Under the pieces are notes generated by a model, which saw nothing but the letters and a program-made list of their open reading frames with translations, had not been told where the DNA came from and did no database searches. From positions 248,001-312,000 of the forward strand of contig NW_003314333.1 of assembly GCF_000143415.4 (NCBI RefSeq): a stretch of DNA of 64,000 nt. Reading direction: 5' to 3'. Numbering within the stretch: the first letter of the stretch is position 1; the number at the start of each line of letters is the position of its first letter. The translations under genes were made by a program, and so were the position numbers. This document shows positions 6,535-48,297 of this stretch, in pieces. Origin of the DNA: Selaginella moellendorffii. Taxonomy: Eukaryota; Plantae; Lycopodiophyta.

Positions 6535-8643
6535 ATGCGCACCATCGTGTGTGGGCGCGAGCACGCTGCTGTAAGTATCTTGCTCGCGCATCGCCTCCCA
6601 GATCTTGCTGCTCGCGACGTCTCCACCAAGGCAGCAGGTCAGCTGCTGTGCGCGCTCAAGGCATGCGGCAGCATTGGCGATGTGGAGCTGGGGAGGAAGC
6701 TCCACTGCGATGCTGCCCACGACGCCACTGTCACCGGCATTCACGTAGCAAACACGCTGCTGAGCATGTACGCGAGATGCGGCAGCCCCGCGGATGCTCG
6801 CGCCGTCTTCGTGGCCATCCCGCGCCCTGACCTCGTCTCCTGGAACGCGCTCGTCCTGGGCCTGGCGATCAACGCTGGCTACCAAGCCGAGGCTCTTCAC
6901 TTGGTGGAGGAGCTCATGCCGGCTTGTGATGCCAGGACCTTTGTAGCGGCAATGGTGGCTTGTGCGAGCCTGGCAGCACGACAAGGAGATCGCGATGGCC
7001 TGGAGTTGCTGGACAGGGCCATGGCTCTACACTCCCGGGCTCTGAGTAGCGGCAACATGGACTTGTTTGTGGCCAACTCCGCGGTGGATATGTATGCCAA
7101 GTGTGGGAGCTTGCTGGATTCCAGGATGGTCTTCGATAGGATGCCGTGCCATAGCTTGGTGTCGTGGAATTCCTTGATATCGGCCTGTGTCGACAACGAG
7201 GAAGCCGAGCTCGGGCACCAGCTCTTCCACACGGTGTCGGATCATGGATGGGAGCCGAATGCGCGGACGTTTGTGGCTGCTCTTTCCTGCTGCTCGTCAC
7301 TCATATCCAAGCAAGGCAGTACTCCCGGAGAACCAAACGTAGTATGTTGGAAGGAGGAGGTTGCGAAAATCCACTCTCAAGCTGCTGGGACCGGCTGTGA
7401 CTCGCAACTCTTTGTAGCAAACTGTTTGATCGACGTGTACGCGAGCTGCGGCAGCTTGCTAGAGGCTCGAGCGGTGTTCAACAAGATGCAAGTCCGTAGC
7501 GTCGTCTCGTGGACAGCTCTACTTTTTGGATACGTCCACAACGGGGAAAGCAGGGCCGGACTGGAGCTGTTTTCGCGCATGCAAGCTCAAGGCTCCGTGG
7601 CTCCAAATGCCTGCACGTTTGTAGCGGCTCTCATGGCTGTCTCGGCCCTGGCGGAAGAAGAAGCAGGCAAGCTTGTCCGTGGAAGGCTTGTCAAAGTGAG
7701 CAGCCTGGAGCACGGGATGGGCTTACACTCCCAGCTTTGCAAGGACGCGGCTGCAGTGACGGACATATATGTGGGAAACAGCATCCTTGTCATGTACACC
7801 AAGTGTGGCAGCTTGCTGGATGCTCGTAGCGTCTTTGATACCATCTCCACTTGGGACAACGCATCCTGGAACTCGCTTCTCCTCGGCTACGCTGAGAATG
7901 GAGAGGCAGAGCTATGCCTGGAACTGTTCGCAGCCATGAAGTCATCAGTCGTTGCAATCGCCCCGGATGCTCGGACTCTCGTTGCTGCACTCGTTGCTTG
8001 CGGGAGCCTTACTTCACTTCAAACTGGAAAGTTTCTCCACGGGGAGATTTGCAGGCACGGAATGGAGAGGGACGTGTTCTTGGCAAACAGCCTCATTGAC
8101 TTGTACAGCAAATGCGGGAGCCTAGCCAACGCAGAACAGGTTTTCGATTCGACAAGCACCAAAAACTCGGTGACTTGGAGTTCACTGATTGCGGGATATT
8201 GTCAAGCAGGAGACGGAAATGATGGAGCCGCTTTCGCGCTTGAGCTCTTGTCCCTGATGCGTGAACTCGGCCTGGAGCCCAATGATGTTACCTTTCTGTC
8301 GCTTCTCACGGGATGCAGCCGAGCGGGGCTTGTTAACAAGGGAAGGCAGTGCTTCCGAGCTATGATCTCGCAACACAGGATCAAGCCTCGCATCGAACAC
8401 TACCACTGCATGATCGATATGCTGGGCCGTGCTAATCGCCTGGAGGAGGCCATGTCAACGCTGGAATCCATGCCTTTCTGTGCAACTCAAGTCACCTGGA
8501 CTATCATCTTGGCAGCGTGTCACAAATGGAACAACGTAGAGCTGGGGACAAGGGCTTACCACAAGCTGCTTGACATGGACGAGAGCCAGATCGCGGCATA
8601 CGTGCTCATGTCCAACATCTACGGGATCAATGCAAGAGCTTGA
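6535..8643 (+). CDS. PLS-class PPR protein ending in E domain (no DYW)
   Basis: Intronless 702-aa ORF; repeated ANSxxDMYAKCGSLxxARxVFD / VSWNSL / PNARTFVAAL; terminal HYHCMIDMLGRANRLEEA...MPF...TWTIILAACHKW...AYVLMSNIY. Confidence 0.95.
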   Translation: MRTIVCGREHAAVSILLAHRLPDLAARDVSTKAAGQLLCALKACGSIGDVELGRKLHCDAAHDATVTGIHVANTLLSMYARCGSPADARAVFVAIPRPDLVSWNALVLGLAINAGYQAEALHLVEELMPACDARTFVAAMVACASLAARQGDRDGLELLDRAMALHSRALSSGNMDLFVANSAVDMYAKCGSLLDSRMVFDRMPCHSLVSWNSLISACVDNEEAELGHQLFHTVSDHGWEPNARTFVAALSCCSSLISKQGSTPGEPNVVCWKEEVAKIHSQAAGTGCDSQLFVANCLIDVYASCGSLLEARAVFNKMQVRSVVSWTALLFGYVHNGESRAGLELFSRMQAQGSVAPNACTFVAALMAVSALAEEEAGKLVRGRLVKVSSLEHGMGLHSQLCKDAAAVTDIYVGNSILVMYTKCGSLLDARSVFDTISTWDNASWNSLLLGYAENGEAELCLELFAAMKSSVVAIAPDARTLVAALVACGSLTSLQTGKFLHGEICRHGMERDVFLANSLIDLYSKCGSLANAEQVFDSTSTKNSVTWSSLIAGYCQAGDGNDGAAFALELLSLMRELGLEPNDVTFLSLLTGCSRAGLVNKGRQCFRAMISQHRIKPRIEHYHCMIDMLGRANRLEEAMSTLESMPFCATQVTWTIILAACHKWNNVELGTRAYHKLLDMDESQIAAYVLMSNIYGINARA

Positions 8644-8757
8644 GTCGGTCCGATCAGCAGCAAACAATGCAGCCCAAGCAACGGAGTCGGGAATGAATGA
8701 CATGGTTATAGCTAGATGTTAAGGCTTGATGTGAATCGGCCAACTCCTGGATGCTTC
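8596..8757. repeat. Collapsed direct duplicate of 9061-10530 (PPR/PPR tail junction plus PPD6 3' end)
   Basis: 8596-8706 matches 9061-9183 (gtgctcatgtccaacat...agcagcaaacaatgcagcccaagcaacggagtc). 8717-8757 matches 10478-10529 (atgttaaggcttgatgtgaatc.gccaactc...ggatgcttc). Confidence 0.85.
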
Positions 8758-8811
8758 CTTGAGAACCAGGATACTGTAAACTCTATGTTAGAACGCGACC
8801 TGCTGCAGTAC

Positions 8812-8901
8812 AGGACTAATTGAACCGGGTGGGAGAGGGATGTGGCTGTCAAGTGGAACTACCCGATCATCATGCCAAGCAACCGACAAGAGTTCATGGC
8901 C
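8812..8901 (+). pseudogene. Possible protein-kinase relic (subdomains II-III)
   Basis: Reads DVAVK...RQEFMA, resembling RLK VAVK...QEFM. Very short with no intact ORF. Confidence 0.3.
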
Positions 8902-45992: not shown

Positions 45993-46699
45993 TGTTTTGT
46001 GTCCAGGCAATCAATCTTTTTCTGGTCGGTCGAGATTTCCGGGAATTCGTTGGGCTTGCCGCTTTTGCATTCGTTGTCGGCACTGTCATGTCAAAGTGCA
46101 CGTCTTCAATCGCCAATCAAGCTTCGAGTTGATCGCGTCCACGATCACGGGACACTTGCAGCTCACACGTATTGGTTTTGGTCTTTTGCTTTGCTTCAAG
46201 ACAAACTTGGTTTACCTGTGCTCTCGTCAATCCGGAGTTCCTGCAATGAGTTTCGATCGAATTTTACTCCCAGTTGAAAGTTCTGAGATCGTGCCGTGAT
46301 CTCTGGCATATGGCCCCCCTGGGAGCAAACTTTCTCAATCTTTCGTAAGTGCTATGACAGGGTCCACCTAGAGGAAATTTTTCAAGGGGGAGAATTTTTA
46401 ACCTCTTGTTCCAGAATCTATAATTTATAAATTATTCCCATGGTCTCAATAAGGTGAATTTTATAACAGCTTATAAAAAGTCTATAGTGTCCATTAACTT
46501 TCTCTTCGGATACCAGCGTGGGCACTCCACACTGACGGAGCTCTTCACCCCCGCAGTTCATCGATTTCATCGATTCTCTCCTTCAGTAAAACTTCCTTCG
46601 CTTTGTCTAGCAGTCTCCGCCAGGAAATCCTGACCGTCCGTTTGTCATTTGTATACCGTATAAAGTCCCGAAGAACCCTAATTCCTTTTCCGTAGGGCA

Positions 46700-47777
46700 A
46701 TGAAGCAACTCGTGGGCAGGGAGAGGGAGCTGCGCGACTTGCTAGGCTACGTGGAACGGCGCATAGATAAGATTGTGCTTCTGCAGGGGCCGGAGCTCTC
46801 CGGCAAGACGGCTCTTCTGCGGGAGCTTCGGGCAGTCATGGCTTCCAAGTATGGCAGAACGATCCCCGTCTACCACCTCGATCTCACTTGTTTCAGAATG
46901 ACGGATGTTCTCGAGTGGATCCAAGGTAACGACAATTTTCTCATGGAAGAGTCCAAAGACTTGACAATCCTAGAGGTGATAGAGGAGATACTAGCTAGTG
47001 AGCATCAACTCCAGCCAGTGTTTATCATCGACCAGGCTGAAAGGATCCCCGAGATCTTTCCGCAGCCACGGGCACTGATAGAAGTCCTTGCGAAGATTGC
47101 ACGGGAGAGGAGAGGAGTGGTGATCCTGGCGAGTCTAGACGACTCTTTGCGGGAGGATTGGCAAGACCAAGTTCTTCCCTTTCACTTGGGATACTTCAGC
47201 GAGAAGGCCGCTAGGGCGTTTCTTCGTAAGCGAAGGGCAGCGGAGGACAGGAGATCGTGGTGGCAGCGGTGGTGGTCGAGGAGAGATCTAGTTAGTGACG
47301 AGGAATGGCGCGAGATATACCCCATTTGTGGTGGCTGCCCCAGGTTGCTTGGATTTTGCGTCTCCCCATACCCGAATCTTAGCGCAATAGTTGGCTCCGT
47401 GGTTGGGGGCGTACACACCGGACTGGAAGGCAGGGATGGCGAGTAAGTGATAGATATCTTGTTTCTAAGAAGTGCTTGGATCTAATCATTTGTGTTTTTG
47501 ATGGTGATCATCTAGGTGGGAGGGGGACAAGTACCGAAGGGTGGCGGAGCTGCTCGTGGAGAATGGAGGGAGCGTGGAGTGGTCTGTTGTTCTGGACAAG
47601 GTGTTTGGCAAGGATGTGAGCGAGGGGAGCTCTCAGCTCCGTGCCATGGCTTCTCGCAACATGATAAACGTCGAGTACTTGCCCGAGTCCAAGACCAAAG
47701 TGGTGATGGCTGGAAGTCCTGCGTATCTTTACGCCATGAGACTCGTGCTGGAAGGGAGAGATGAGCCGGATGTTTGA
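46700..47777 (+). CDS. Archaeal-ATPase-like (ATPase_2/STAND) P-loop protein with C-terminal wHTH-like region; one intron (about 47443-47515)
   Basis: LVGRERELRDL; IVLLQGPELSGKT; PVFIIDQA; VVILAS; IYPICGGCPRLL (GxP). Splicing joins DGE-WEGDKYRRVAELL in frame to ORF 47541-47777. Confidence 0.75.
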
Positions 47778-47849
47778 CAATTCCTTCGTTCTATTCTTAA
47801 GTTTGATTTGATCTGGATGAACAAAACTATTGTTATTACAAAAACAGTA

Positions 47850-48297
47850 GAAAGGTGTGGCCCTTTTCTCTCGCGAATGCTGGGTAGCCAAGCAAGAACT
47901 CAGCACCTGGGCTGCTCGTGGAGCTCGAATAAAAAATCTTGTCTCGACTGTTTTAGATCTTTGTGAACATCACGATCGATACGCGTACGCTTTATAGACA
48001 CTTGCGGGCTTGGACTGGCCGCCAAAACAGCGCTTTCCAACAGTGAGAGCACGAGCTTGTGAAAAATCCGACTCTTCTCCAGTAATCTCATCTCAGCTTG
48101 CATCTTTGGAGATTATTGTCCGGAAAGATGCCTTTTCTGCGATCGTTGTCAACACTAGTGCACGTCTTCAATTGCGAATCAAACTTCAACTTCGCCCACG
48201 ATCACACTTGATCACGGGTATTATTCTTTTACTCTTTTCGCAAAAACTGTACTGGTTATGCCTAACTTGTGCTCTCGTCGATCCGGATTCCCTGCAA
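47850..48297. repeat. Decayed direct copy of about 45345-46245 (DUF2834 3' half plus APX 3' end)
   Basis: ccaagcaaga.ctcagcacctgg; cttggactggccgc.aaa.cagcgctttccaacagtgagagc; agtgcacgtcttcaat; tgtgctctcgtc.atccgga.t.cctgca appear in both copies. Confidence 0.85.

Follow-up and report, generated by a model that had tools for sequence, protein, structure and literature searches.

The stretch analysed here, called the window, is 64 kb of Selaginella moellendorffii scaffold GL377637.1 (assembly GCA_000143415.2; window base 1 is record base 248001). The genes in it are a typical land-plant set with hardly any spacer DNA between them, and include many PLS-class PPR genes, a PI4K-gamma gene with ubiquitin-like domains, an HMG-CoA synthase (HMGS) gene and a peroxidase gene. 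A preliminary description of this DNA had reported four places, numbered here as cases 1 to 4 in order of position, at which a segment (the cargo) lies between two direct copies of the neighbouring gene ends, each neighbour being intact on its own side and the redundant halves being eroded. Self-BLAST of the window, followed by sensitive pairwise searches which resolved each case into a chain of blocks, found all four direct duplications at the positions claimed, as collinear chains of blocks that are 69-100% identical (E-values of 1e-22 to 1e-35 for the main blocks). Outside the noise produced by PPR repeats, the 64 kb contain no other direct pairs at kb spacing. The arrangement of copy, cargo and copy is clean in cases 1, 2 and 4, but does not hold as described for case 3, where only the PPR side is duplicated around HMGS.

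The second haplotype, scaffold GL377630.1, was obtained as three overlapping pieces (L002, L011 and L005) and is collinear with window positions 1-54129 at an allelic identity of 96-98%. It was used as an internal yardstick of neutral divergence and as a second reading of each junction. In the alignment to L002, window 1-8748 corresponds to 3478-12214 and window 8749-15899 to 13464-20594. Cases 2, 3 and 4 have an identical layout in both haplotypes. An empty site had been proposed for the other haplotype as a check, and there is none; both haplotypes carry every event.

The weighted identity between copies is ~86% in case 1, ~89% in case 2, ~72% in case 3 and ~76% in case 4. As these identities differ (72-89%), the events differ in age, and all are far older than the split between the haplotypes. 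In the public assembly each haplotype has scaffolds of its own, an arrangement known to give rise to false duplications, and mis-joins of haplotypes could in principle mimic such a pattern. However, the copies are only 69-89% identical and riddled with insertions and deletions (indels), whereas true alleles fall in the range given above; the two haplotype scaffolds independently show identical structures, and the second allele of the case 2 cargo also appears in contigs from an independent run, where it shows both of the 6-bp deletions seen in the second haplotype scaffold. Mis-assembly, which had been named as one way in which the duplications could prove false, is rejected on this concordance, and the probability that we would still assign to it is negligible.

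The reciprocal decay described previously was borne out by the alignments for cases 1, 2 and 4. Small deletions, frameshifts and stops are numerous in the relic halves, and the intact halves have reading frames that are open and conserved between haplotypes, with splicing and expression seen in addition for one of them (the PGM gene of case 2, below). Allelic divergence is 3-11% with 3-16 indels per kb in the relics, against 0.6-2.7% and 0-2 indels per kb in live genes. Large deletions are also documented in the relics: 1.3 kb has been lost from the case 1 relic, and a 1249-bp deletion is specific to one haplotype.

Cargo genes at the boundaries of three duplications

Case 1 lies between the PPR genes PPR702 and PPR410, and consists of two blocks, 8594-8706 matching 9060-9183 (84%) and 8716-8746 matching 10478-10508 (97%). 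What the window retains of the cargo is 8749-9059 (plus strand), the 311-bp 3' tail of a PF01637 (ATPase_2) P-loop gene. It begins at a deletion scar (8748-8749, unstranded) present in the window haplotype only, where 1249 bp are missing that GL377630.1 retains (L002 12215-13463). The open frame in this 1249-bp stretch matches PF01637 with E = 1.4e-8, above the gathering score, and the complete cargo is 1414 bp long (L002 12340-13753). Most of the apparently open ATPase_2 gene is thus gone from one haplotype and the sequenced plant is hemizygous for it. The segment had previously been taken for a possible kinase relic. That identity was dropped, as the other haplotype shows it to be the tail of an ATPase gene that is complete only there.

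The left relic copy of case 1 (8594-8746, plus strand) holds the antisense 3' end of PPR410 and a 31-bp piece from upstream of PPR410, and overlaps the live final 50 bp of PPR702 (coding sequence 6535-8643). In the other haplotype this relic continues into a 3' piece of the PsbP gene (L002 12256-12339, matching 15356-15440). The order along L002 is PPR702, a reduced relic (12060-12339, composed of the PPR410 3' end, 29 bp around the PsbP stop and 85 bp of PsbP 3' sequence), the 1414-bp cargo and the full unit (13754-15440). The right, live copy in the window (9060-10750, plus strand) opens with a 37-bp relic of the end of the PPR702 E motif (frameshifted codons for the conserved AYVLMSNIY, with a 4-bp insertion), and continues through intact PPR410 (9097-10329, minus strand) to the PsbP 3' end (minus strand). 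As the right copy opens with a genuine PPR702 coding relic, PPR702 and PPR410 stood tail to tail before the ATPase gene arrived. The case is sharp on all four edges. In the reconstructed ancestor, the 3' coding ends of the convergent PPR702 and PPR410 genes overlap by ~13 bp (window 8594-8643 and 9097-9183; L002 12060-12109 and 13791-13877). PPR702 terminates halfway through the Pfam E motif.

In case 2 the neighbours are a phosphoglycerate-mutase-like gene (PGM, His_Phos_1; 21371-22410) and PPR583 (coding sequence 25506-27257), and six blocks link 21928-22603 with 25211-25765 (82-100%). The other haplotype keeps 12 bp that were lost from the right copy of the window, and this places the unit start at 21909 matching 25204, in agreement with the earlier estimate. 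In the left copy (21909-22603, plus strand) the live PGM 3' exons are followed by the spacer and then by what is left of the first ~260 bp of PPR583, now a relic. In the right copy (25204-25765, plus strand) it is the PGM 3' exons that are a relic, with deletions, and beyond the spacer lies the PPR583 5' end in its live form. Both therefore hold the series PGM 3' exon, spacer, PPR583 start. RNA sequencing (RNA-seq) supports four GT..AG introns in PGM at good depth, and depth falls to near zero from ~22480 onward. One PGM intron has alternative 5' splice sites (21585 and 21624, both joined to 21684, with about 31-42 vs 6-8 reads), and single-nucleotide polymorphisms that are heterozygous at roughly half depth indicate that both PGM alleles are expressed.

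The case 2 cargo (22604-25203, plus strand) is 2.6 kb long. Its single gene shows a Walker-A P-loop and a C4HC3 zinc-finger pattern, and its C-terminal part is Crinkler/RHS-like. An NTPase joined to a restriction-endonuclease fold would define a Crinkler/RHS-type NTPase-nuclease, and of this the Walker A motif is what is seen here. Its best Pfam match is nSTAND_NTPase5 (E = 2.4e-5), under the cut-off of that family, and for the C-terminal part there are atlas leads only, to oomycete and trypanosome RHS (RHSP) clusters (0.89-0.91). No RNA-seq reads were found for it, and its alleles differ by 3.2-6.9% substitutions and by about 10 indels per kb, most of which have lengths not divisible by 3. 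Based on the absence of reads, the high allelic divergence and the frame-breaking indels, this cargo is a decaying, untranscribed pseudogene. Capture of a promoter from the duplicated PPR 5' end was considered for it and rejected, transcription being absent altogether.

Case 4 involves a gene of 319 amino acids and an ascorbate-peroxidase-like gene on the opposite strand (live gene on the minus strand, about 48281-49971). Five blocks link 45361-46275 with 47855-48369 (70-95%). The unit was fixed at 45345-46275 matching 47850-48369, a start close to the earlier estimate, and the right copy of the window has lost its first 11 bp relative to the other haplotype. It runs from within the 319-amino-acid gene to 88 bp into the last exon of the peroxidase gene. 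The left copy (45345-46275, plus strand) holds the live 3' part of the 319-amino-acid gene, the spacer and a peroxidase relic (minus strand) of the last ~29 codons, which contains a stop. The right copy (47850-48369, plus strand) holds a relic of the 3' part of the 319-amino-acid gene together with the live peroxidase 3' end. Both copies thus have the 319-amino-acid gene 3' part, the spacer and the peroxidase 3' end in this order, and the four edges are sharp.

The case 4 cargo (46276-47849, plus strand) is 1.57 kb long and carries a STAND/ATPase_2 gene with its coding sequence at 46700-47777, 424 bp of upstream sequence and one canonical GTAAGT..AG intron. Between haplotypes this gene shows 0 indels in 1078 bp vs 13 per kb just upstream, and on that ground it looks to be under constraint. 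An imperfect direct repeat of 10 bp, CAGTTGAAAG / CAGTAGAAAG, bounds the cargo, its two halves matching in register at 9 of 10 positions (46266-46285 and 47840-47859). The repeat could be a microhomology used in template switching, or a short ordinary duplication made at a tandem junction that already existed.

These three cases share one geometry. In each of them, both copies include one and the same contiguous stretch in which the end of gene A meets that of gene B. A and B were therefore neighbours before the duplication took place, with the cargo as the late arrival. In no case does the cargo interrupt a relic; it lies where the two copies meet (sharply in cases 1 and 4, within ~40 bp in case 2), and each neighbour gene is intact on one side only. 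The duplicated units are about 1.69, 0.70 and 0.93 kb long in cases 1, 2 and 4, respectively, and across the three cases the duplicated target spans 0.5-1.7 kb. The shared A-B junction together with the cargo at the boundary agrees with the earlier proposal of giant target-site duplications for these cases. The accompanying idea, that such a route rescues both neighbours where intergenic DNA is near zero, also fits, as every duplicated unit begins within one gene and ends within another.

Two copies would also result from a plain tandem duplication of a larger block which already contained the cargo, followed by fractionation, and deletions of 1.2-1.3 kb are known from this region. In cases 1, 2 and 4, however, the observed order (x, y-relic, cargo, x-relic, y) would require an ancestral arrangement of A, B and cargo and then two exact deletions of kb size, one of which must restore the 10-bp spacing between the PPR583 and NIF genes. 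Remnants of the cargo within the relic copies, which had been named as the sign of such a history, were found in none of the relics in any case. Furthermore, the PPR702 coding relic in the right copy of case 1 means that PPR702 abutted PPR410 before the cargo was there. As an explanation of the pattern, a plain block duplication is therefore considered improbable; its best fit is to case 3.

The PPR796 and HMG-CoA synthase region

In case 3 the supposed cargo is the intron-bearing HMGS gene (38933-40878, plus strand), which is conserved between haplotypes (2.15% substitutions, 1 indel). A block chain links 38197-38769 with 41080-41901 (69-92%). On the left is the 5' end of the live PPR796 gene (38197-38797, minus strand; coding sequence 36407-38797). 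On the right is a relic of the same 5' end (41080-41901, minus strand) which is very rich in indels and has an in-frame TAA; at 11% allelic divergence and 16 indels per kb it is the fastest-decaying DNA of the region. Between HMGS and this relic lies a weak relic of the PI4K-gamma 3' end (40897-41079, minus strand), with a core at 40980-41008 that matches 42127-42155 (86%, E = 2.4e-4). The local alignment scores 64, vs 42 +/- 6.4 in shuffled sequences, and 0 of 300 shuffles reach 64. No comparable PI4K 3' match was found in the 135-bp spacer between PPR796 and HMGS.

The duplication of the PPR side reported for this case was thus recovered, but the weak PI4K 3' relic lies on the wrong side for the architecture that had been proposed. 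The order is PPR 5' end, HMGS, PI4K 3' relic, PPR 5' relic and PI4K. This is exactly the order predicted by a plain tandem duplication of the segment from the PPR 5' end through HMGS to the PI4K 3' end, in which the second HMGS was later lost, and it is not predicted by a cargo placed at the junction. No remnants of HMGS turned up, and we therefore take plain duplication in case 3 to be an evenly balanced call. HMGS was probably ancestral at the site, and is not to be counted as a cargo.

Order of duplication and insertion

The reading we favour, with somewhat more than even confidence, is that cases 1, 2 and 4 represent three independent events of duplication plus insertion, of different ages, and that case 3 is more likely an ordinary tandem duplication. 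For the three clean cases a single event is the most economical account, because a gene inserted independently at a later time would by chance land on the boundary in only about 1 in 100 trials per case.

A sequence of two steps was weighed against this. The gene-end junction would first have been duplicated in tandem, which would have provided the only neutral DNA nearby, and the cargo would have been inserted later by any route; the pattern would then be one of survivorship, the genome being compact. That relic DNA can absorb change is clear, and the CAGTTGAAAG / CAGTAGAAAG repeat of case 4 holds the first bases of the unit, as would a short target duplication made at a tandem junction. There is also an 8-bp near-match between the end of the unit and the flank of its start which could yield a plain tandem duplication, although it is not significant. 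Insertion into pre-existing neutral DNA does not however account for a cargo at the boundary in all three cases, with no relic split despite 0.5-1 kb of neutral target, nor was any cargo-free tandem duplication of kb scale seen, either in the window or at the other loci examined. Both the two-step history and its corollary of survivorship are considered unlikely, if less so than the block duplication discussed above.

Under the single-event reading, gene-sized DNA (1.4-2.6 kb, consisting of one compact intron-bearing gene with short flanks) would enter a break in a gene-dense chromosome. Concurrently, 0.5-1.7 kb of the target would be copied to both sides, which can be described as a long target duplication or equally as a tandem duplication with an insert at its junction. 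After the event each neighbour would have one complete and one truncated copy; selection would retain the complete copy, and the truncated halves would decay through small and large deletions, giving reciprocal decay. Chemically, this might be achieved by fill-in of widely staggered breaks that captures a free DNA fragment, or by replication that switches template to a donor and then back to a position upstream. The cargoes are copies of DNA and not retrocopies, since a canonical intron is kept and a poly(A) tail is absent; insertion as a retrocopy or by a long interspersed nuclear element (LINE) is ruled out on the same two grounds.

Several observations weigh against these interpretations. 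The simultaneity of duplication and insertion is read solely from geometry and parsimony, with no empty site found, and the far edge of case 2 is blurred by ~40 bp. Microhomology at the junctions was not above background in a test made without positional constraint, the in-register match at the two case 4 junctions apart. No donor locus was found for the STAND cargo, and a mechanism of copying must assume that its donor was lost. That all three of the clean cargoes are nucleoside triphosphatase (NTPase) genes is not expected from a purely passive accident of repair. As for case 3, the match behind its reading as a plain duplication is a weak one of 29 bp, and the relic shows no remnants of HMGS in either haplotype.

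Cargo families and known systems

The ATPase_2 scores of the case 1 and case 4 cargoes are 34.9 and 35.3 bits against a cut-off of 33.2, and precomputed Pfam domains on P0123 agree with this assignment. Among 1.84 billion cluster representatives the STAND gene of case 4 has ten relatives, the nearest being 41% identical. Most are S. moellendorffii paralogues (25-41% identity), and the others include sequences from two green algae and a fern. The ATPase of case 1 belongs to this family too, as a distant member. The idea that the cargoes are recent copies of one element was rejected, as cargoes 1 and 4 share the P-loop region alone.

The preliminary description had raised the possibility of a mobile element class from two NTPase cargoes in four. 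The bias has become stronger, as all three clean cargoes are P-loop NTPases (n = 3), but the class itself has not been upheld, there being no element termini and no recombinase. Comparison of the cargo ends gave no inverted repeats, no long terminal repeats (LTRs), no shared terminal repeats and no Helitron ends. A transposase, integrase, reverse transcriptase or recombinase was likewise absent, and Pfam searches of the cargo frames gave P-loop NTPase matches only. An LTR pair or transposon was accordingly rejected as the source of the structures.

Paralogous STAND loci were also inspected, and flanking host duplications are absent from L007 (GL377654.1), from L008 (GL377598.1) with its allele L010, and from L009 (GL377566.1). 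The L009 locus is a simple tandem array. It contains two to three STAND units of ~2.1 kb at 3599-11365 (72-80% identity), and the annotated 471-amino-acid 'gene' there spans two of them. Only one other direct pair at kb spacing was seen among these loci, in L008; it consists of the two LTRs of a decayed retrotransposon, which served as a positive control. This retrotransposon (10961-14896) has 177-bp LTRs at 88% identity and remnants of integrase and reverse transcriptase, and is absent from L010 (9520-9526), which is otherwise 89-96% identical.

One could still suppose dedicated mobility, in which NTPase or NTPase-nuclease cassettes move as units and integration itself makes the kb-scale target duplications, perhaps through circles or a pair of endonucleases acting in trans. 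The uniform NTPase content of the clean cargoes is in its favour, as is the fact that two of them belong to one narrow family nearly confined to Selaginella and the third is Crinkler/RHS-like. The cargoes also each amount to exactly one gene, with flanks kept to a minimum, and the STAND gene has no donor copy left. Precedents exist in the long target duplications of Helicobacter (as reported via PMC2869330) and, in a green alga, in those of 900 bp that Dualen elements produce. The missing termini, inverted repeats and recombinase speak against it, together with a duplication length that varies between 0.5 and 1.7 kb, the three paralogous ATPase loci that lack flanking host duplications, and the fact that the cargoes are only distantly related to each other. 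The kept intron and missing poly(A) speak in particular against LINE-mediated retroposition. We think it doubtful that integration of this kind made the duplications, and hold the same low expectation for single-gene NTPase or NTPase-nuclease cassettes as a truly mobile class in Selaginella; a new class of mobile element is not supported.

The cargoes are instead members of fast-turnover P-loop NTPase families without machinery of their own, and two of the three are dying (cargo 2 as a pseudogene, and cargo 1 through deletion in one haplotype). A simpler reading is that conflict-type families with fast turnover are those most often copied and retained for a while, which matches the transposed genes of Arabidopsis.

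Some further repeats were observed elsewhere in the window. A 42-bp in-frame tandem repeat lies at 15738-15989, inside a minus-strand gene of 1516 amino acids; the haplotypes differ in this array (1516 vs 1508 amino acids) and the alignment breaks there. Two inverted pairs (56478-56556 with 57838-57760, and 56719-56803 with 58120-58034) and one direct pair (57536-57652 with 58004-58120), all at 85-88% identity, together resemble nested small inverted-repeat elements. A long imperfect repeat with a 12-bp period (CTCGGACTCGGA-like) occupies an AT-richer stretch at 59728-60023, and may be coding low-complexity sequence or a minisatellite.

How ordinary plant genes that are not transposons relocate is still unsettled, and the three Selaginella sites are unusually readable footprints of it: whole intron-bearing genes lie between kb-long target copies, with both neighbours rescued, three stages of decay and one cargo that is polymorphic between haplotypes. 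They suggest that where spacer DNA is nearly absent, long target duplication may be the main route by which a gene can enter without killing a neighbour. As all three cargoes are conflict-type P-loop NTPases, this is also a concrete hypothesis that is testable genome-wide.

A close likeness is found in Arabidopsis, where genes that have transposed, together with their introns, often lie between direct repeats of genic target sequence of which the orthologous empty site has a single copy (Woodhouse, Pedersen & Freeling 2010; PMC2869330). F-box, defensin and leucine-rich-repeat (LRR) classes are enriched among these genes. The same paper discusses long target duplication, with reference to Helicobacter, but prefers excision as a circle followed by homologous re-insertion. 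Both systems have intron-bearing, non-transposon genes between repeats derived from the host, and families of fast turnover, like the NTPase cargoes. The Arabidopsis repeats were however scanned at 30-400 bp, whereas those of Selaginella are 0.5-1.7 kb, span two gene ends and are reciprocally decayed; and the empty site is known in Arabidopsis, whereas the Selaginella events are read without one.

Insertion with long target duplication has been described in Helicobacter pylori (Nobusato et al. 2000, as cited in reference 12 of PMC2869330). As far as that citation conveys it, the likeness lies in transposase-less gene units placed between long direct target duplications, and the difference is that the system is bacterial. 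The inserted Helicobacter units are reportedly often restriction-modification genes. To our knowledge, no eukaryotic counterpart of this form of insertion has been demonstrated.

Target duplications of kb scale do occur in a green-lineage genome, as de novo insertions of the Dualen LINE in mutation-accumulation lines of Chlamydomonas have median target duplications of 900 bp, which are attributed to widely spaced nicks (PMC9977147). There the insert is the LINE itself, whereas the Selaginella inserts are intron-bearing, host-type genes without poly(A) or a reverse-transcriptase remnant. Movement of genes as filler DNA in break repair is established in grasses, according to PMC3445842 (citing Wicker et al.), and tandem duplications with a templated insertion at the junction, arising from break repair or from template switching in replication, are outlined in PMC7368036 and PMC8355091. 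Such events lead to the same outcome, a contiguous segment present as two direct copies that have foreign DNA where they join. They usually involve smaller duplications or short templated inserts, however, and a donor is expected, whereas none was found for the STAND cargo.

Classical transposons make target duplications of 2-20 bp, of a length that is fixed for each family, and have defined element termini. A direct repeat of the target on both sides of the insert is common to them and to Selaginella, but the short fixed length and the defined termini are not. From the precedents in Arabidopsis, Chlamydomonas and grasses, the Selaginella sites differ in the greater length of the duplications, the spanning of two gene ends with rescue of both, reciprocal decay at three ages, and the lycophyte host.

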